Assembly (NCBI RefSeq): GCF_000315625.1
Contig: NW_005434518.1
Coordinates: forward strand, 89,151-124,898
Source: Guillardia theta CCMP2712
Lineage: Eukaryota > Protista > Cryptophyta
Reading direction: 5' to 3'
DNA length: 35,748 nucleotides
The notes beneath the pieces are model-generated. The model had not been told where the DNA came from and made no database searches. It saw nothing but the letters and a program-made list of their open reading frames with translations. The position numbers and the translations under genes were made by a program. Of this stretch, positions 1-26,700 are shown in pieces. Every line of letters begins with the position of its first letter. Positions within the stretch are counted from its first letter, which is position 1.

Positions 1-400
1 CTTTTTGTCTACCCTACCCCTTGCTTTCTAGCCTGTTATGCCCGGGAACTCAACCCCCACCCCCTCTTTGCTCTACTTACTCAGCACGTACTTCGAGGAC
101 CGCGGCATCCGGTAGGAAGCGAAGAAAGTTTCTTTACTACAAGTCACGGGATTGGACAATGCTTCCACCCCTACCTACACTCTAATGCAAAGACCGGTGT
201 AAATGAGTGTATTATCACGGGTAACTAGCAGAGAAACAAGTACCCCCACCCCGGACGACGTGATCAAGGCCCAGGCTTGCCAGCATTTTGTGTAGTATCG
301 CGTCTCCACCCCTGTCTCCTTGGAATCTTAGGACCCACCCTTGCGCTGTTATTTTGTACCTTCATGTTCCAGCGATAACCGACCCTGGCACCTCCTTTTC
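1..400. repeat. TACCC/CACCC-rich intergenic island (type A)
   Basis: Dense CTACCC/CCCACCC words and AAGTACCCCC at 238. The same vocabulary occurs at 4255-4560, 21060-22210 and 33005-33585. Confidence 0.55.
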
Positions 401-799
401 TCCTTTTCTTGATAACGGGAACACAACGCTTCTCACGTCCCAGTCTTGCGTCGTTTGATCACTAAATGTGTTTTTCATGAGATTGTAAACAGTATCTTTC
501 GAGATCTCCACGAGGACAAAAACTTTGTAAGCACCAACGTGGCGGATGTGCTACAAACTCTCGTACAGCCACGAAGTCGCTCTAAATTTGACTTTTAAAA
601 AAACTTGCATAAAAATGTTTTACAGGCGTTGCCAATCCTTGCGACCCAATAATATTGTTTTACTTCTGCCACAGAGGTCAACAATGATTTTACTTCTGGT
701 GTACTATAACACTTTTATTTTGCCGTGACCAACAGCTGGGCTCAAGTAGTAATCTCATGTAGTAAACATAAAATCCAATAACCGAAGAAACTGGGGGAC

Positions 800-1830
800 G
801 CCGATCGGATCAGAGTCACGGCCACCCTCTTGAGCCTCGGAGAATCTGACTCTGTGAGGCATTCGGGGCCCCGGTGCCGGACCGGCCGGGCCGGCCGGCG
901 CGGCCGGCCAGTGTCACTCCGTGGCACTGGTCAGTACGGACTCACTGTGAAACTTGAAACTTTCTGAGCGCCGGGGCCCGGCGACACACTGTCTGGGCCG
1001 TTTATTGCGCGGCCAGTGATTGAGAAGGTAACTTACCGTAGCCTGTAGTAGGCCGCTGATAGCCCTTCGCGGTATGGTCTGCCACCGTGCCCGTGGCACG
1101 GTACGACAGTGGTCAAGCCTAGCCTGAGGCTCGTCTACTCTCCTGCTGTCGGAGGCTCGTACTGATTTTTGACTTAACTTTGAGTAGTGAGATGATACTC
1201 CTGCCAGGCTGCCGATTCACGGTCCTCGTACTGATTTTTAACTTTGCCTGAGTCGAAAGAAAGCCTGGGATAGAAACGTTGAAAGGCCCAACTTAGCAAG
1301 GTCCTAGCCTTTATTCAGTGTGCCCGAAACTTCAACCGGCGGCGGCCACTCAGTGCCGCCGCTGAGTGCCGCAGTGCGCGGCCAGGCGGCACTGCCGCAG
1401 TGTCGGCGTTCACCGTGCACTGGGCCGCCGGAGTCCGATCATGCGGCTGATCCCGGAGTCCGATCGGCGAGGCCCGGCGGGCTGCCAGTGCCGGGCGGCC
1501 CGGAGTCCGAGACCGTCGGAGCCTCCGAAGTTTCTGCCCGGCGGCGACTGAGCTCCAGCGACTCGCGCGGCTGAGAACTCAGTGAGAGTCAGAGTACCTG
1601 CCGAGTGTCACGCCGGGTCGGCAGCCTCCGACCTGACACCCGGCCGCCCCGGGCGCCCGCCGCTCCTCACCGTGGCTGTCCGGCACTGCGGTGCCGGGCA
1701 CCCGCTCCGACGTCTCAGTGTCACGGTGGCAGCCTTTCAAAGTTTCTCAGTCCCTTCAGCTCAGTCCACTCAGTTCACTGCCACTGTTCTCCGATCGGAT
1801 CCACTCAGTGAGCTGGCAGCCTCTCAGCGG
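800..1830. repeat. GC-rich palindrome-dense block (type B)
   Basis: Built from CCGG/GGCC, CCGATCGG, GAGTC/GACTC, CTCAGT and GTCAC words. Shares CTTAACTTTGAGTA (1173-1186) with 23270-23283. Confidence 0.55.
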
Positions 1831-2362
1831 CATGATATGGCACTCCCGTGGAGAAGGCTCGAGTCCCGGGACACGGATCCGCCCTTATCTTCCCAAACGA
1901 TGGGCCTCTGCCCGGCTGTCTATCCTCTCCCTATCCTGCCTTTCCGAACCCCAGCCTTTCGTCTTTCTCTCCCCAGGGCCCGGCCAATACCCCAGCTCTC
2001 CCCCAGGCAACCGCTCTCCAGGCCCTGAGGATTCCAACCGTTGAACTCCCAATGCCCACAACCACACCCAAACCCCCGCACCCACCCCTTCTCCCTCCGA
2101 CCTCTCGCTGTCACATCCTCCTTTCGTTTGTCCCTTTTCTCTATCCGAATCTCTCCCTCCTCCTTCTCGCTTGACGGAATGCATCCCCCCAGGCTCGCCA
2201 TCGCCATTGACGCATCGCCCAAGGGCTCAACCATGTTGGGACGTGCCTGCGACGCTTGCATGCCCGATGCCAGCCCAACATCATCATATTACTCCAGAGG
2301 TCCTCCTGCGTACAACTAAAGTGTTTGGTCCGACCTGAACTCAAGGAACTGAAAGGCCCCAG

Positions 2363-3411
2363 TCATAGGATCACTTTCCTGATCGGGCGGACAGTTCCTG
2401 TCCGGCGATTTCTCTGAAACATCTCCTTGATGTTCTGCAGAAGCGTAAGCCCTCAAACCATTCGAAAGGAGGCACAGTCGCACAAATTCGTATTCGACGT
2501 GATTGCTGGCTGTGAACAAGCACACATCCTTGTTTTCCTGCTGGGCTTGTTCGATGGCCTCCTGGGGTCAAGAGGGAAAGTGTCAATCTTGTGAAGGATG
2601 GGGAGGGGAACAGCAACGCAACTCACACTCCCCTCTTCAGGAATATCCATCCAGCTGATGGAAACAACGCGTCAAAATCGAACGAGACTGTTGACGAGGG
2701 AAAGAGGACGGGGAGAGCAGGGGAGTGCTGAGATATTGCCAGTACCCATCGTCCCCTGCCAAGAACTGCCACTTTGTCTCCTGCGATCAGGTATCAGCAG
2801 GACGATGACGTCATCGGAGGTAGAAAGAAGCGTACGCTGTGATGATCGGCATCTGTCAGATCGACAACGACGTCTACATTCAAGTCCGGCAGCTGATCGA
2901 TGAACATGGAACTTAGCAGTCAGAACAAGGCATCCAAGCTTTCTCATCCGAGCACCACTTGCTTCATGTCTCCCTTGCAAATGCAGTCATAGAATCTTTC
3001 CAGGTATTCGACGGCCTTGCATGTCCCTTCCTTCTCCTTGAGCTCCAGGGCCTTATGTTTAATCTGCAGCAGCCGTCAGCCAGACTTTCATGGTTACTCT
3101 TGAGATCAACTTGTGGATAGTAATCGAACAAGCTCGGGAGTGTTCTCGTTTCTTCCCAACTCCTGAGGATCTCTTCAGCTCCACAAAAACATGCACAAAC
3201 TTTGGCATACGATTCGCCAGGAACAGTCGATTCGATGGTTTTTACAGATATCTTCTTGTTGTTCAGGAGTTGAAAGAGTTCCTTTAGAGACAAGATTTTC
3301 AGATCGTGTCAAGATTCGATGCATTCTCTGCACAAGACATAGATCCTCGACATGCCCTACCATCCCGCTGCGTCTAGAGCTCCACCCTCCTTTTCTCTTG
3401 CTGAATTCCAT
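2363..3411 (-). CDS. Small multi-exon WWE-domain protein
   Basis: Phase-consistent exons 3063-2959, 2892-2836, 2780-2746, 2654-2627, 2561-2484 and 2434-2363 with GT-AG introns give a C-terminus ...ETKWQFLAGDDGWMDIPEEGSEAIEQAQQENKDVCLFTASNHVEYEFNIKEMFQRNRRTGTVRPIRKVIL*. This matches the WWE pattern (W..W..E..Y..M.Q.N..TG..R.IR). The 5' exons and the start at 3411 are less certain. Confidence 0.8.
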
Positions 3412-3489
3412 TCACGCTATCCACCTCATTCCTTGACTCACCCTCGTGTTCATCTTAGGCCATCATTCTGCCACCACTTCCTCCATCTT

Positions 3490-4122
3490 TAATTCACTCC
3501 TTCCCTCCTGCACCACCTCTGTCCTCTCTCCTCTCCCTTTCTCCTCTCTCCTCTCTTCTCTTCCTCTCTCCTTTCTCCTGTCTCCTCTGGCTGTCTCCCC
3601 TCCTTGTCTCCTCTGTCCTCTGTCCTCTGTCCTCTTTCCTCTCTTCTCTTCCTCTCTGATCTCTGATCTCTGTCCTCTCTGCTCTCTGCTCTCTGTCCTC
3701 TCTGCTCTCTGCTCTGTCCTCTGTCCTCTGTCCTCTCTCTCCTCTTCCTTTCTCCTCTCCCTTTCTCCTCTCTCCTCTCTCCTCTCTCCTCTCTTCTCTC
3801 TCCTCTCTCCTCTTCCTCGCTCCTTTCTCCTGTCTCCTCTGGCTGTCTCCCCTCCTTGCCTCCTCTGTCCTCTTTCCTTTCTGCTCTCTCTCTCTGCTCT
3901 CTGCTCTCTGTCCTCTGTCCTCTGTCCTCTCTTCTCTCTCCTCTCGGAGGAGTCCTCCTCCTTTCTCCTGTCTCCTCTGGCTGTCTCCCCTCCTTGTCTC
4001 CTCTGTCCTATGTCCTCTGTCCTCTGTCCTCTGTCCTCTCTGCTATCTGCTCTCTTCTCTTCCTCTCTGCTCTCTGCTCTCTCCTCTGTCCTATGTCCTC
4101 TCTCTCTCTCTCTCCTCCTCAC
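3490..4122. repeat. CT-rich low-complexity tract with internal duplications
   Basis: CTCTGTC/CTCTGCT units. A 38-bp unit TCCTTTCTCCTGTCTCCTCTGGCTGTCTCCCCTCCTTG recurs at 3569, 3821 and 3959. Confidence 0.85.
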
Positions 4123-4164
4123 CTGCCATCGCACTTCGCCCACTTCGATCGACATGGTCAAACT

Positions 4165-4560
4165 AAGAAAGTATCCGGAAAAGTATCCGGAGAAGTATCC
4201 GCCAGTATCCGAGAAAACCGTTACATTGGTTCAAATGTTTCAACACAATGGCGACCATGGACCTAGGTAGGGTACTAGAAGTACCCGTGGTTTTTAAATC
4301 AAAAGTTCCTAAAAAGTACCCCCTCGTCTGAATTGGACTCCTTGGAGGGGTTAAAAAATACGTTACCATCCCCTTCGGAAAAACTCACTTTCGCTCAACG
4401 TTGAACGATTGGTCAAGACTTCTAAAAATAAACTATTGACATGTACTGAAACTTAAAAAAAGAAATCAATCACCCCACCCTCTGATATGAAATTACGTTT
4501 CATACATGAGGGGTCCTGATTTTCGTTCGTCCTATTTCAAAATTTGCCTTGTTTCCCGCC
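4165..4560. promoter_or_regulatory. Candidate bidirectional promoter island (type A) between the WWE and DnaJ genes
   Basis: AGTATCCG x4 (4170, 4182, 4194, 4204), AAGTACCC at 4279 and 4314, an AT-rich core, and divergent flanking genes. Confidence 0.4.
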
Positions 4561-4787
4561 ACCTCCTTACCCGCACTCTACTCCCTCCCTCTCCCCTCTT
4601 CCGCTCGCCCCCTCCTCCTCCTCCTTCCTATCCCTCTCCCCTGCTGCCCAATCTTCTTCTCGATACACCTCTTCATCATCAGGCATCAAGAGGCAGGAGC
4701 GCCACAGGTCCATGCGTAGAGAGCGGTTGGATTGTGTACTACTGTGCATTTGGGCGCATCGGATGTAAGTTCTAGGTGGGTGAGGCG

Positions 4788-7735
4788 ATGAAGTTGCGAG
4801 AAGAGATGAATGCGCAACGAAGACTAGTGCATCAGCTCGTCCTGGTCTTCTCTGGCGCTGTTATCTTCTTGTCTTTCTTGCCAGGAAACAGCGCTGGTGG
4901 TGTCCTGTGGGCCAGGGAAGCTGCAGGGACCAGACCGGATCTCCGCACGCTTCCTCTTCATGACGCCAAGTGTGTGGCTGCAGCATTTCGTCTCCGAGGA
5001 GGCGCTCCCAAGAAGAAGCCAAAGGCAGCGGCTGCAAAGAGTGTGAAGAAACAGGCTGCCGGTGATGCCATGGACGTGGCTGATCAAAGCATGTTGGCGA
5101 ATGATTCGAACAAGGGTGGAGGCAACCATGAGAAGCCGAGGATTGACACTTGCCCCGACACGCAGAACCTTGACAAGGATGAGACGGACTCACTCTACTC
5201 AAGCGACCTGCCGCTTCAGAACCACGATGTCGGCAAGACTGACGAGTCGTGGCTCACGCGATCGCAAGTTCCTTATGGCTTCTATAATATTCTCGGCCTG
5301 GATAGATCGGCAGGTGCTAAGGTAGCTGACAGTACTACCAATATCATGCCTTAACGCTCGATGAGCAGGAAATTCGTCAGGCTTACCGAAAGCTTGCTAT
5401 TCTTGCCCACCCCGATAGAAACCAGCACAATGTCGAAGAAGCAACTGCAAAGTTTCAAATCTTGCAAGTACTTTACACTGATGCACACGATCCTGGATAC
5501 CTGATATCTTGACAGAAAGCATACGAAGTTTTGTCAGACCCCAGCAAGAAGAGCTTGTATGATATTTCTGGTGAGACCGGAGGCTGTGCGACGTTTAAGT
5601 GTAATACAACTTGCAGGCCTTCTGGAAGAGGATACGACCGAGTTCGGCATGGGGATGGGAGACATGGCGTTCAACGATGTCGTCGAGTACTTCAGACAAC
5701 TTGAGAGGGTACTGAGATGCCCATCTGCGACCTTGCGAGCGCCGCTGAACGCGATGGGTCCAGGTTGTTTCGCAAGAGGACATAGTCTCGTTCGAGGAGG
5801 AGGTAAGTAGCTAAGACTGTTACAGTCCTACTCCCTTCATGATGCCGTCTACAGTATAGGGGCAATCCTCCGGAGAAGTCAGACTTGATTTCCTTTTACC
5901 ATCGTTTCAAGGTCATGCTGCCGGCTGTGATCGCAAGGTCGCTGAATGCTTCCCTCATACCATTCAGGGAGACTTGGCGGATGTCATTGCATACATACCA
6001 TATGCAGAGGATGATGACATGATGCGATTTCGTGCGATTCTCACTCGCGAGGTAGATCTAGACCTGTCTTGTAGACTGCACTTGTCGCAGAGTGATGCTG
6101 ATGTTCCTCCGACAGGTCCAAGAAAAGAACCTCCGTCCTTATGAAGCGTTCAACGCATGGAAGTTGGACGACCAGACCTTGAAGGTCCTCCGCTCATTTT
6201 TCTATTTGTTGTAACTGACTGACCTGCAAGAATACGCCTGAGCTGATGGTTCCCAAGAAGAGAATAACTACACAAGAAAACAACGCTAGCGTAAGTGACG
6301 TTGCTCACTACACAGCACAACTCCCTCAGTTCATGCTTCTGCAACAGTTTGAAGCACTGAGAGCAAAGATCCAAGACAACAGATCTAAGAGAGCGCAAGA
6401 CATAGTCGACAAGCTTCAAAAATATGCTCCAAATGCTGCCAAGTCACAGCCCAGCCTGGAGGCAGCTCGGGTACCCGGTCCCTCCCGTACTTGCCGGGTC
6501 TGACTTGCTGCCTCTCAGGGCTCTATAGACAACGCCATCTCCGACAGGCCGAAGCGACAGGCAGCTCTCCATCGCCCGCAGCAGGCATTGAGCTCTCCGA
6601 CTTGAGATTGACTCGTGACCCTCATACCTCCCAGCATGCTCCGGTCGTCCGAGCGGTCGCTCAGAAGTCGACGGCAAGACCTCAAAAGGCCCCCAAGCTC
6701 AAGTCTGAAGCTGCTGGCAAGCCGGCGGGGAAGAGAGGACGACCGCCGTCAACGAAACCAGCCGAGGTCGCCAATGCTGCCGCGAAGAAACCTGCCAAGA
6801 AGATTGGGGCGAAGAGCAAGACCAAGGCTGCGAGCGCCAAGAAGGACGAAGGGGTGATGAAAGGCGTTGAGAAGATCAAGAAGGCTGGAAAAGCCGGAGA
6901 AAAGGCCAAGGAGGCTCCTGCTAAGGAGAAGACATCCAAGGACAACAAGACGTCCAAGGCTTCTTCCGCCGTGAAGAAAGTTGGCACGAAGAAAACAGTC
7001 GAAGCCACTTCCAAAGCCAAGGTTGCAGGAAAGAAAGAGGCAGCAGCCAAGACAAAGAAAGCTTCCAAGGAGACTGGCAAGAAGAGCAAGACTGATGAGA
7101 ATGTGGATGTCAAGCCAGAAAAGAAGAAACAGGGAAGGCCCCCCAAGGCAGGAGCCAAGACCAGCGCCAAGGCGACCAACAAGTCGCAGCCCAAGGAGAA
7201 GAAAGCTGCTGCTGCTGTTGCTGCTCCTTCAGGCCAGGCGGCCAAGCAGAACCCGCCAGCCAGGAAAGCAGCGAGCGCAGCCGCGGGGAAGAAGTCTGAG
7301 ATGTGAGCTCGTGCCTTGCCGGGGACGTTTGACGTCACCTCACGCCTGGTGCTCCTGCAGCGTTACAGCTGGTTCAGCCGCCATGAGGGCCAAGGTGGAC
7401 AAGGACAGGGTGGTGGCGAAGGCGGCAAGGTCTGAGCATGCGCGACTTGCAAGGCTGGTCTCTGACATGCGACCCAGCGCTGCTAGGAGGCAGCTGGGCA
7501 AGAAGGTGATCCCTGTGGGGGGCTCGGCCAAGATCAGCGGAGGTCTGACTTGCCTCGTCCCTCTCCCGCATCGTCCAGTGACTGAGATGCAGTGAAGAAG
7601 CACTCCCGCAACCCTCTCAAGAAGAAGCTTGTCAAGAGGGTGAAGAACTTCCCTGTGCCCTCCCAGCCGACGGTCAGTGACTTTTGCCAGGCTGCCCAAG
7701 GCCGCCGGGCCCCTGGAGCGAAGCCCTCGGCCTGA
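4788..7735 (+). CDS. DNAJC9-like J-domain protein with N-terminal signal/transit-like leader and Lys/Ala-rich histone H1-like C-terminal tail
   Basis: The spliced J-domain reads FYNILGLDRSAGAK|EIRQAYRKLAILAHPDRNQHNVEEATAKFQILQ|KAYEVLSDPSKKSLYD (HPD intact). It continues into a DNAJC9-type segment VVSQEDIVSFEEE|YRGNPPEKSDLISFYHRFK|GDLADVIAYIPY. It can be spliced in frame into the K/A-rich exon (~6635-7302) with KRGRPP and KQGRPPK, then small basic exons to TGA 7733-7735. Confidence 0.8.
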
Positions 7736-8025: not shown

Positions 8026-8133
8026 GAGAACGATACCCAGGTTGTAGATGTAGAGCACGATACCCAGGTTGTAGATGTAGAGAATGATTCTCAGGTTGTA
8101 GATGTAGAGAACGATTCTCAGGTTGTAGATGCA
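8026..8133. repeat. 27-bp minisatellite x4
   Basis: GAG(A/C)A(C/T)GAT(AC/TC)(C/T)CAGGTTGTAGATG(T/C)A at 8026, 8053, 8080 and 8107. Confidence 0.9.
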
Positions 8134-9451: not shown

Positions 9452-9985
<534 letters not shown>

Positions 9986-11617: not shown

Positions 11618-13357
11618 CATTCCAGCTGAAGACAAAAACGGAGGAGGAGACGACATCGGAGAAGTAGGGGATGGTGAAAGGAGGATTGAGCGGGAAGAAG
11701 ATGAAGCGATGCAGAAACATGGAGGAGACTGGAGGGAAGGGGAGGAACAGCAGGATCATCGATGGGACGTGGATCCAGAGATGAATCAAGATGGAGAAGT
11801 TGAGGAGGAGAACGTGGAAGAAGAAGGCGCACAGGAGGAGAAGGAGGCAGAGCAGCAGCAGCAGGAGGACGATGGAGAAGAAGAGATTTCGTTCAAGAGC
11901 GTGAGCGAAGGTCAAGACTCGCCTGCAGATGAGGTGAGCTATGGCTCCTCTCCCAGGCTTTCTTTCTCCTTCCTTCTCCCTCCCCTCTCCTCTCTCCTCT
12001 CTCTCCTCTCTCCTCTCTCTCCTCTCTCCTCTCTCCTCCCCTCCCTTCCCGTCCCCTCTCCTCCTCTCTCTTCGCTTCCCCTCTCCTCCTGTTCCTCTCC
12101 TCTCTCCTCTCTCCTCCAATCCCTTCCCGTCCCCTCTCCTCTTCTCTCTCCCCCTCTCCGTCTTCTTATCCCCTTCTTTCTCTCTTCGCTCTTCTCTCCT
12201 ACCCTCCCTTCTACATTTCCCTCCCTTCCCCTCCCCTCTCCGTCAGCTCCTCTGCTCCTCTCTTTCTTCCCCTTGCTCATATTTCCTTCATCCTCATTTT
12301 CCTGCTCCTTCAGAGTCTTGCAACTCTCCCAAGTTTGCCGTGCAAGTGCTCGAGTCCGGGCGAGGAGGAGGAGGTCATCCTTCAGCAGGAGAAGGACGAA
12401 CAAGAATCGCCCGTGCTGCTTGAGGCAAGCAACGAGGAGAAGAGAGTTTCCAACAAGGTTGATAATGAGGAAGAGCAGCAGCAGGAGCAGCAGGAGCAAG
12501 CGGTAGAGCATGTGCAGGAACAGCAGCAGAACCAGGAACCGGAACAGGAAAAGGAACAGGAACAGGAGGAAGAGGGCAGTGAAAGAGCTGCTGAAAGAGC
12601 TGCTGGGTCAGCCGAACTGAAAGAAGAGGAAGGAGCTCGCGATCAGTGGTCGACCGTAGGGTTGAAGGAAAGCGACGAGGTGAGACTGTTTCATGCCTCC
12701 CATCACAATCGCCCTCGTTTCATCTTACTCCTCCTTCTTCTCCTTCTCCCTCTCCTTACCCTCCTCCTCCTCCTCCTCCTCCACCTCCTCCACCTCCTCC
12801 TCTCCCCCTTACCCTCCTCGTCCTCTCCTCTCCCCCTTACCCTCCTCCTCCTCCTCCTCCTCCTCCTCCTCCTCCTCCTCCTCCTCTCCTCCTCCTCCTC
12901 CTCCTCCTCCTCCCCCTCCTCTTCCTCTCCCCCTTACCCTCCTCCTCCTCTCCCCCTCCTGCCTCCCCCCTTCCTCCCAAATCTTTCTTCTCTCCACTCC
13001 TCTCCTCTTTAGCCCTCACAATTCTCCTCAGAGTCTCGTTGACCTTCCAAGTCTCCCGTGCAAGTTGTCGAGCACAGCAGGAGAGGATGAGGAAGAGGAA
13101 GAGGACGAGGAGTCCAGGCAGGGCCGAGGGGAGGACGAGTCGTTCTGCCCATCGGCATGCGCAGCATCAGCACTGTATGAAGAAGATGTTGTGAGTTGAG
13201 AGAAATGTCAACAGTCGAGAAGGAAATGACCATGTCTGTTGTTTGCAGATCATGATCCCACAGCCATCTCATCATGGTAAGAACTTCTGCTGGAGCTAAA
13301 CGAAGAGATGAGATTGTTGAGCAGGTGAAGATGAGCACGGAGACATTCTTGGCAAAC

Positions 13358-23732: not shown

Positions 23733-26700
23733 ATGTCTTCTTGGCTCTTGCTGTACATCATAGTCCTGGCCCTTGCCAGCAGCTCGACAGCCTACACCAT
23801 CTCAGATTGCAGTGCCTTGGTCTCCTTCTACCAGGCCATGACCGTCAACACCAAGTGGACCACCTCGACCGGCTGGGTGACGACGGATGACTGCTGCTCG
23901 TAACATCTGCGACCGTTGTAGGATCTGCTCTCCTTACCGAGCCTTCCTCCGCAGGTGGTATGGAGTCACGTGCTCGTACTCCACAAGGAATGGCACTGGG
24001 TTCGGCCCTTGGGTGTCTGCGTTGCAGCTGCCGAACAACCAGCTGTCAGGGTACCTCCCTTCCTCCTTCAGCCTCCTCTCTCGCCTTGAGCGCCTGGACC
24101 TCTCGCACAACAAGGTCAAGGGAGACATCTCAGTACTGCTGCAGATGAAGGTGCCACGTCATGGTGCTTGGGAGGGAGAGGCAGTGGGAGGGAGAGAAGG
24201 GAAGGGGGGTATGCGGGCGGGAGAGAAGGGAGGTGCCCGAGAGGGAGAGAAAGGAGGTAACTGGGGGGAGGGAAGGGAGGTACCTGGGAGGGAGGGCCAG
24301 TTGAAGGAGTTTTTTCAGGCATCTTCTGTGTGCATCGACACGGCAACGAGCCAGATACCCGACACCGTATTCGAGTCAGCCTGCAACTCCGACCTCAACT
24401 GCCTCGGGGGCGTGTGCAGGTGGGAAGAGGAGGTGCGGGGAGGAAGGAGACTGATAGCTCGGCAGTGTGGTGGGAGGGTTGAAGGAGATTCGGCTATCAG
24501 ATAACATGCTCAACGGGACTATTGGAGAGGAGATATCCAAGTGAAGGAGGAGGAGAGAGACGAGGCTGACGTGACACGTCCTGGCAGCTTGTTCAAGACT
24601 CTGACGATCTTGGACCTGAGCGCAAATGAGCTGACTGGGCCCATCCCCGCAATGGTCCTGACCTTTGTCCTGCTGGGTCGTCGGATGTGCTGACAGTCCC
24701 TGGTGACAGATCGGGACGCTGACGCAGCTAGTCGAGCTGAACCTCTACTACAACCAGCTCAGGTGAGCCCGCCCGAGTCTCGCTGTGTTGTGAGGTTGTC
24801 AAACTCCAGCGGGCCGATACCGGAGATGATTGGAATGCTGGTCAAGGTGAGTGAAGACGATTGAGGACGGAAGGATGGTGTCTATGTGAAGATATCGATG
24901 ATATAATGGAGAAGATATCGATGATATGATCAATGGAGTTTTTGATACGATGAGGGTACATGATAGATCATGAGATGAGAGGGAACTGCTATTAGCACGA
25001 AGATAACGACTCTCCTCAGTTGAAATACTTGAATGTCGCCTTCAACCTCCTCAACGGAACCCTCCCCTCCCAGGTTTGCTGCTCCTCCATGATACTCCGA
25101 TCCCTCTCCTCCCCTCTGTTCTCACCTTTCGCTCCCCTCTTTTCCTCTGCCTTCCCTCCTCTCTCCTCCTGGTCCCCCATCACACTTCCTCTACAGAATC
25201 TTCCCCCTGTCTGATCTTCTTCTGATCTCCATCATCCCATTTTCTCTTCCATTCCCAACCTCTCCTTTCCTCCTTCGCCTCTCCTTCTGCACTTTTCTCT
25301 GTCCTCCGTTCTCACTTCTTTGAAGATGGTCAACCTCCAGCGCCTTGAGCAGCTCGACCTCTCAGTCAACAGAGTGCGTGCCTCCCCTCCTCCTCTTCCT
25401 CCTCCTCCTCCTCCTCCTCCTCCTCCTCCTCCTCCTCCTCCTCCTCTTCCTCCTCTTCCTCCTCCTCCTCCTCCTCCTCCTCCTCCCTCGCCCCCGCCCT
25501 CTTCCCTCTCGAAGAAGTTTATCTCTTCCCGGATACTCTCAATCCTCTGCGCATTTGTACTCTTGTCTCGTGTCCTTCCCCATCCCTTTTCTCTCTTCTT
25601 CCTCCTCTCCCTCCTCCCTCCTCCTCCCTCGTCTCTCTCATCTCCCTCCTCTCCCTCTCTCCCATTCTTGACAGCATGCTTCAAGTTCGTCAACGGAATT
25701 CCTGTGGACATGGGCGTCCTCATTTTCNNNNNNNNNNNNNNNNNNNNNNNNNNNNNNNNNNNNNNNNNNNNNNNNNNNNNNNNNNNNNNNNNNNNNNNNN
25801 NNNNNNNNNNNNNNNNNNNNNNNNNNNCCTCCTCTCCTTGCACTACTCCCCTGTCCTTTCCTCTCCTCTCCTCTCCTCTCCTCTCCTCTCCTCTCCTCTC
25901 CTCTCCTCTCCTCCCCTCCCTCCCCTCTCCTCTCCTCCTCTCCTCTCCTCTCCTCTCCTCTCCTCCCTCCCTCCCTCCGCTCCCCTCTCCTCTCCTCTCC
26001 TCTCCTCTCGTCCCTCCCTCGCTCACTCCTCCATCTGCCCTCTCCTCCTCGCCTCTATCTCACTCTTGCAACTCTCGGGATCCTCATCGTGATACAGAAA
26101 CATCAGCCTGGACGACAAGGGCAACTGCAGTCAGGACGAGTACTCCATGTGGTACGTCATGGGACACAAGATGCCTTGCAACTCGGCAGTCAGGTATGCA
26201 GATGTCGTTTGCGAGGAAGAGAGGAGAGGCGAGGAGCGAGGAGAGAGGAGAGAGGAGTCTGGAGGGTAGCGGGCGGGGAGAGAGAGGGCAGAACAAAGAC
26301 TGACCAGCCTTCTGAGCAGCAACTCGCAGTGGTGGTGTAACGATTGCAGTGCCCCTTACCCCGCCAACCCCACGGTCGCCTCCTCCTCCTCCTCCTCCTC
26401 CTCCTCCTCCTTGCTCTGCGCTTGCCCGTTGAACCTGCTGCAGCTTCTCGCCTCCCCCATGTCTGACTGCCGCCCCAACCTCATCCCCGTCCCTCCTCCT
26501 CCCGGCCCGACCACTCAGATGAACGTCCCTGCCACGGTGAGCTCCTCCTCCTCCTCCTCCGCCTCCTCCTCCTCCTCCTTCACTTCCACTTCCACCTCGT
26601 TGTCCCCCTCCTCCTTCTCCTCCTCCTTCTCCTCCTCTCCAGCAGGGTCTCAGCTGCTTGACAAGGTGGAAGTCATCTCCTCTCCTGGCCCTTGCCTGCG

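Follow-up and report, generated by a model that had tools for sequence, protein, structure and literature searches.

In cryptophytes and diatoms, proteins of the periplastid compartment are described as carrying a bipartite signal, in which a signal peptide is followed by a transit-like part that has no aromatic residue and no Leu at +1 (Gould et al., 2006; Gruber et al., 2007; as cited in PMC6105332 and PMC12136025). Among the papers covered, those that define this signal give the +1 rule only and make no mention of an xLRGG ending. Here we describe a gene of the cryptophyte Guillardia theta CCMP2712 at positions 4788-7735 of a 35,748-nucleotide stretch of DNA (contig NW_005434518.1 of assembly GCF_000315625.1, forward strand; hereafter the window). 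The leader of its product has a signal-like N-terminus, non-aromatic +1 options and a spacer that tolerates acidic residues, just as in the described periplastid signal. However, the described signal has no defined end, whereas many G. theta leaders, including this one, end in xLRGG, which probably represents a so far undescribed leader-end processing signal. At a rough probability of 60%, we read the gene product as a nucleomorph-bound, DNAJC9-like J-protein with a periplastid-type leader that ends in an FRLRGG processing site.

Several known systems resemble parts of this arrangement. The periplastid compartment uses ubiquitin in import by the symbiont-specific ERAD-like machinery (SELMA), and ubiquitin itself is released from precursors—polyubiquitin and ubiquitin–ribosomal fusions—that deubiquitinases cut after LRLRGG. 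In these precursors, as in the G. theta leader, the tail lies N-terminal to the protein to be released, and a ubiquitin system is at work in the compartment, but in the leader the tail is preceded by only about 35 unrelated residues without a beta-grasp fold, and it alone would have to suffice. A ubiquitin-tail motif that serves maturation outside the ubiquitin fold, as we propose here, is found with coronaviruses, whose PLpro is a papain-like protease and deubiquitinase that cuts LXGG sites in viral polyproteins; there, the motif belongs to a viral polyprotein and here to an organelle import leader, and there is no evolutionary link. Ubiquitin-derived elements also serve the import into red complex plastids in the case of PUBL, a plastid ubiquitin-like protein required for apicoplast import (PMC5487736). 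PUBL is, however, a ubiquitin-like protein in its own right, whereas the element described here is a motif within cargo leaders. As to the protein behind the leader, human DNAJC9 is an Hsp70 co-chaperone for histones H3-H4, and it shares with the G. theta protein a J domain with HPD that is followed by a region to which the latter has a weak HTH_DNAJC9 match, whereas the G. theta protein has in addition an import leader at its N-terminus, an acidic linker, and a Lys-rich tail of 320 residues with AT-hooks. As to the destination, the nucleomorph encodes H2B, H3, and H4. The nucleus-encoded H2A has the same type of leader as our candidate and has been located in the nucleomorph by immunofluorescence (PMC5443833). 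Both are nucleus-encoded proteins of a chromatin type with a signal peptide and a non-aromatic transit-like leader.

Translation of 4788-5354 gives M-K-L-R-E-E-M-N-A-Q-R-R, followed by LVHQLVLVFSGAVIFLSFL, PGNSAGG, a 30-residue spacer, FRLRGG, and APKKKPK. In a rule-based test, the first part has the properties of an endoplasmic reticulum (ER) signal peptide: the n-region is basic with a net charge of +2, the most hydrophobic 15-residue window (residues 17-31) reaches a Kyte-Doolittle mean of 2.7, and the small residues N-S-A and S-A-G at positions −3/−1 permit a signal-peptidase cut after residue 36, 37, or 38. The +1 residue would therefore be G, G, or V, none of which is aromatic or Leu, and the corresponding residues in Hanusia phi are G, S, and S. 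According to ASAFind 2.0 (PMC12136025), periplastid leaders typically contain acidic residues and stromal ones do not, and the spacer, in which such residues are present, fits a periplastid better than a stromal leader. We considered xLRGG as a leader end when it occurs 13-65 residues after the signal peptide and where the conserved mature part begins; in the present case its last residue is residue 72, about 35 residues past the signal. Exon 1 has no match to any Pfam family at E<=1 and hence no beta-grasp domain before RLRGG; since the spacer of about 35 residues has no Pfam match, the ending is a tail mimic and not the end of a ubiquitin-like domain. Within the window, the RLRGG at 4989 is the only one with an upstream Met and hydrophobic core. 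The original prediction, made from the sequence alone, had named a hydrophobic signal-like N-terminus, a spacer without Phe at +1, and an RLRGG at 4989-5003 that is closely followed by PKKKPK, and all of these are borne out by translation and hydropathy, so that a bipartite non-Phe leader of the periplastid type is supported by the anatomy of the leader.

The leader is part of a transcribed and spliced gene. The reading frame, built from RNA splice joints, runs from ATG 4788 to TGA 7733-7735 and comprises 723 codons in 16 exons. An in-frame TAG is located upstream at 4773-4775, and ATG 4788 is therefore the earliest ATG in frame. Positions 4300-7700 (3,401 letters) were compared with spliced RNA contigs, which stem from three runs, each of a different study; the contigs start at 4553, 4593, and 4596 and run through exon 1 into later exons, so that the transcripts reach at least to 4553-4596, about 190-235 nucleotides before the start codon, and the leader therefore belongs to the mRNA. 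A transcript start downstream of the leader, which had been named as an observation that would speak against the prediction, was not seen in the three assembled transcripts, and the sole run of raw reads consists of 14 reads, which is too thin for detecting minor alternative starts. Of the 15 introns, 14 are GT-AG introns of 46-64 nucleotides each according to the three transcript assemblies, and all three assemblies also contain a GC-AG intron at 6585-6634 with the donor CAG|GCATTG. An apparent stop codon, TGA 7304-7306, is removed by splicing, as a GT-AG intron begins at 7303, and four short exons beyond this intron contribute 75 basic residues up to the stop at 7733-7735. The protein therefore has 723 residues, and a reading as a 271-residue open reading frame is a truncation. 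The 5' untranslated region contains a short upstream open reading frame, and there is also a CT-rich tract at 4540-4660; the two may have an influence on initiation at 4788. Directly upstream of the gene (3516-4120) lies a large tandem array, likewise CT-rich, with the 7-nucleotide unit CCTCTCT and higher-order periods of 138 and 252; similar CT/GA-rich arrays are numerous over the window, for example at 9551-9863, 11965-12196, and 25829-26056. Directly downstream of the gene, at 8026-8131, there is a 27-nucleotide tandem repeat (3.9 copies, 92% matching).

A lone RLRGG is unremarkable by itself, and the argument for a leader end comes from its recurrence. Among the published reference sets in the ASAFind 2.0 supplements, xLRGG is found at the boundary of leader and mature part in 7 of the 17 signal-bearing G. 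theta rows of the periplastid set (Appendix S3, PMC12136025), and LRGG in only one of 101 cryptophyte plastid proteins (Fisher p=3e-6). The leader ends and mature starts are MLRLRGG and GKEKHH in EF-1alpha, where the latter corresponds to canonical residue 2 onward, ALRLRGG and VDGED in 14-3-3, PLRLRGG and FRGDD in RRM1, ALRLRGG and GLPYRY in cyclophilin (CyP), MRLRGG and NVAM in Cdc48, MSLRGG and AGSD in starch synthase, and IPLRGG and ANPTG in Ubc8. LRLRGG, the most frequent form in G. theta, is the same as the last six residues of ubiquitin. A genome locus encodes RLRGG and then GKEKHHCSIVVIGHVDSGKST, a sequence identical to that of the published G. theta periplastid EF-1alpha gt_84077. The sole carrier in the plastid set, XP_005839318.1 (PMC12136025, Appendix S9), has G and not F at +1, with ALRLRGG 13 residues later, and by these leader features it looks like a periplastid rather than a stromal protein. 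Thalassiosira periplastid proteins have a looser [LIAG]RGG at similar positions, namely in sDer1-1, TrxH, sSec14, and both sCdc48 proteins, which is suggestive of the same kind of leader end. In the full-text literature that was covered, which did not include Gould et al. (2006) and Curtis et al. (2012), we found no description of a leader-end xLRGG in connection with the periplastid compartment or Guillardia, and a ubiquitin-tail ending on periplastid leaders thus apparently has not been described so far.

The same association is seen in the genome. The coding pattern [LF][RS][LF][RS]GG has 353 matches genome-wide, as compared to 193 for the reversed peptide. We analyzed a sample of 200 kb around the earliest-listed matches, in which sites on the minus strand are mostly not represented; as the sites were picked by the motif and not by their upstream sequence, the test of association is fair, but small. 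Of the 11 RLRGG sites that were not cut by a locus end—a small number—six are preceded, at a distance of 35-55 residues and without leaving the open frame, by a Met and a hydrophobic core, and a seventh resembles them but stays under the threshold, while 29 permutations of RLRGG gave 37 sites, none of which has an upstream Met and core (Fisher p=4e-5). A chance match of RLRGG was therefore rejected on the basis of both the genome sample and the published sets, and the tie of the motif to signal-like N-termini in this genome, for which a count had been suggested as a check, goes far beyond chance. Two further observations concern the motif. An identical 17-mer, TTGAGTCTTAGAGGTGG (L-S-L-R-G-G), occurs on five contigs (C8:1171620, C14:11657, C161:109967, C222:1396, C576:1391), which suggests a repeated gene or mobile element that carries the motif and would inflate raw genome counts. 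On the minus strand of contig C2 (L012:1962-3899), a long low-complexity open reading frame rich in Glu, Gln, and Lys begins in a signal-like manner and contains AAAKLRGG and then GEGGHKSRRRKKGK, and thus a further leader-end motif with a basic patch behind it.

Searches with exon 1 (1.84 billion representatives; 5.8-billion-sequence set) gave a Hanusia phi protein as the only relative; among the representatives, its cluster was accompanied just by one spurious repeat protein. No encoding contig is on record for the H. phi protein. In the alignment, the signal core and PGN-AG are identical between the two species, the 31 residues preceding the motif are only about 23% identical, and the identity picks up exactly at LRGG and extends through PKKKPKAAAA; H. 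phi has HLRGG, with H in place of the initial R of RLRGG. A second and unrelated case, from the genome sample, is a ZNF598/Hel2-like RING E3 protein, encoded by a single-exon open reading frame with a signal-like leader on the plus strand of contig C3 (L014:2564-3946). Its leaders have diverged but end with VRRLRGG, followed by SVGEKG, in G. theta and with SRRLRGG, followed by TDAETE, in H. phi, and its homologues outside the cryptophytes have no leader and begin at the RING finger. Judged by its similarity to ribosome quality control factors, this protein is a candidate periplastid ribosome-rescue factor. With the recurrence at periplastid boundaries, the association in the genome sample, and the conservation in H. 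phi, the proposal of a functional ubiquitin-tail-like RLRGG at the leader end has gained support from three sides.

Behind the leader, the protein is of a chromatin type, as had been assumed. Domain searches were run exon by exon, and the DNAJC9 assignment rests on such exon-wise matches. Exon 2 matches Pfam DnaJ over the cut-off (E=3.3e-9), the HPD is present, and J domains of the PDB were also matched; a DNAJC9-like piece follows. The final 320 residues contain 23% Lys, and this tail includes two AT-hook-like cores with basic flanks, a full R-G-R-P core in KRGRPPS and a partial one in QGRPPK. Membership in the DNAJC9 family is likely but not settled. In a cryptophyte, the combination of a J-protein, AT-hooks, and a secretory signal is understandable mainly for a cargo of the nucleomorph. 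PKKKPK fits the classical import consensus K-K/R-x-K/R and may act as the nucleomorph import signal. A Pfam Histone search for the leader-bearing nucleomorph H2A returned only leaderless host histones. The coordinates of all features are given in the following table.

Features of the gene in the window, with the basis of each assignment
Feature	Positions	Strand	Basis
5' untranslated region, minimum extent	4553..4787	+	RNA contig starts; direct sequence reading
Short upstream open reading frame, 18 codons	ATG 4713 to TAA 4766-4768	+	Direct sequence reading
Signal-peptide-like segment, residues 1-36 (basic n-region, core residues 13-31, PGNSA)	4788..4895	+	Translation; hydropathy
Transit-peptide-like spacer, residues 37-72 (6 K/R, 3 D/E, non-aromatic +1, FRLRGG end)	4896..5003	+	Translation
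FRLRGG leader-end motif, residues 67-72, putative processing site after GG	4986..5003 (RLRGG 4989-5003)	+	Translation; recurrence
PKKKPK, basic patch resembling a classical nuclear localization signal, at the would-be mature N-terminus	5007..5024	+	Translation; H. phi identity
J domain with HPD	5274..5570 (exon 1 to 5321, exon 2 5369-5467, exon 3 5516-5570)	+	Pfam; PDB; splice joints
DNAJC9-like middle region, exons 4-10	5617..6470	+	Weak HTH_DNAJC9 match in exon 7; splice joints
Exons 4-10	5617-5708, 5764-5802, 5855-5911, 5968-6051, 6116-6184, 6231-6290, 6348-6470	+	RNA joints
Lys-rich tail, exons 11-16, two AT-hook-like cores	6519..7735, including TGA	+	RNA joints; composition
Exons 11-16	6519-6584, 6635-7302, 7361-7429, 7478-7542, 7593-7639, 7691-7735	+	RNA joints

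In the model that we favor, the signal peptide (about residues 1-36) would bring the protein into the ER lumen around the complex plastid, and the non-aromatic transit-peptide-like spacer (about residues 37-72) would mediate its passage through SELMA across the second membrane, by which it reaches the periplastid compartment. FRLRGG would be the local copy of the xLRGG leader end that is common to many periplastid-targeted proteins of G. theta, with [LI]RGG in some of those from diatoms, and a periplastid protease that recognizes the ubiquitin tail would cut after GG and free a mature protein beginning with APKKKPK. The basic N-terminus and the Lys-rich tail would direct this protein into the nucleomorph, where it may act with periplastid Hsp70 on the nucleomorph histones H3-H4. 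The periplastid ubiquitin gt_155024 is an imported precursor in which a ubiquitin-like domain ending with LRVRGG is fused to a ubiquitin ending with LRLRGG-SY, and an RGG-cutting activity must therefore exist in the periplastid compartment. A more far-reaching and tentative generalization, which we would not yet bet on, is that cryptophyte periplastid and nucleomorph proteins, and in the looser form those of diatoms, are matured by a ubiquitin-tail-specific protease that cuts after a built-in LRLRGG mimic. The ubiquitin machinery of SELMA would then have two tasks, to power translocation and to set the N-terminus of the mature protein. Of the original interpretation, the periplastid-type leader, the recurrent ubiquitin-tail end, and the chromatin-type protein stood, whereas the cut after GG, a deubiquitinase as the enzyme, and PKKKPK as a nucleomorph import signal are still proposals.

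Several points weigh against this model. The signal peptide was assigned with a simple hydropathy rule and not with SignalP, and the association in the genome sample comes from the small set of 11 sites. The periplastid reference proteins hemE and iddi lack the motif, which is thus not obligatory. The expected peptides starting after GG are absent from the T. pseudonana N-terminome supplements, and no mature N-terminus is on record. Regarding the identity of the protein, HTH_DNAJC9 matches exon 7 alone with 16.4 bits (E=0.01), which is under the cut-off of 27, and a PDB search with exon 7 gave no match. No leaderless host paralogue of DNAJC9 was found when the own genome (87.1 Mb, 669 contigs) was searched with exon 1, exon 7, and the Pfam profile PF23302, but these searches, which gave the gene itself or no match at all, are insensitive, as the exon queries are short and the PF23302 profile missed even the present gene, and dual targeting may therefore still apply. 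Regarding the enzyme, a deubiquitinase normally also grips the globular part of ubiquitin, and this leader has no such part. The only periplastid deubiquitinase with a name is ptDUP, a candidate from diatoms; its clade is missing from cryptophytes (bioRxiv 10.1101/2025.03.31.646294), which weakens ptDUP as the cutting enzyme.

As an alternative to a cut site, xLRGG could be a sorting or retention signal whose reader is a ubiquitin-binding component in SELMA or in the periplastid compartment, such as one on the Cdc48-Ufd1-Npl4 side; residents would be marked and held back from the stroma, while their leader is cut off at another place or retained. The motif is indeed found on periplastid leaders, which are non-Phe, and stromal leaders of the Phe type are essentially free of it, as would be the case for a discriminating signal, and cleavage has so far not been observed. 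However, a signal in the spacer could sit anywhere, whereas the motif has a fixed place, right where the conserved mature part begins, in EF-1alpha, Ubc8, and the ZNF598-like protein, and the discrimination of periplastid and stromal proteins is already accounted for experimentally by the +1 residue rule in the cited literature. We therefore consider a sorting signal unlikely, and a processing site preferable.

If xLRGG is a cut site, the protease does not have to be a deubiquitinase. A periplastid processing peptidase or a protease directed at basic residues could read R-x-R-G-G, in which case the likeness to ubiquitin would be convergent or incidental. The lack of the ptDUP clade in cryptophytes, the absence of a ubiquitin fold upstream of the motif, and the looser [LIAG]RGG form of diatoms agree with such an enzyme, but the commonest G. 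theta form matches six residues of the ubiquitin tail, and a ubiquitin system is at work in the compartment, where a ubiquitin precursor has to be processed. We regard this possibility as improbable, slightly more so than the sorting signal, and the cut by a protease that recognizes the ubiquitin tail remains our preferred explanation. That RLRGG is present by chance, and that the hydrophobic N-terminus merely serves as a signal or anchor for the ER, or is skipped because translation starts downstream, in a protein serving the host nucleus, is very improbable: although only a single DNAJC9-like gene was detected, the upstream open reading frame and an internal Met at residue 98 could give leaderless products, and the raw-read run is too thin to reveal alternative starts, the signal core, LRGG, and PKKKPK are kept in H. 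phi, the leader lies inside three assembled transcripts, the motif is strongly tied to signal-like N-termini, and the paralogue searches relied on short and insensitive exon queries.

The present prediction of periplastid residents from sequence rests mainly on the missing Phe at +1. With a conserved ubiquitin-tail ending, proteins of the periplastid compartment and the nucleomorph could be recognized by a positive mark in their sequence, and the ending would link the ubiquitin system of SELMA to leader removal in a direct and testable manner, with LRGG-reactive probes as a handle for finding the protease. If the tentative generalization given above is true, the LRLRGG mimic represents a novel class among the processing signals of targeting peptides and, at the same time, a sequence tag that predicts the periplastid and nucleomorph proteome. 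The gene itself points to a host-encoded histone co-chaperone that would be delivered to the nucleomorph, which bears on the control of the relict nucleus by its host.

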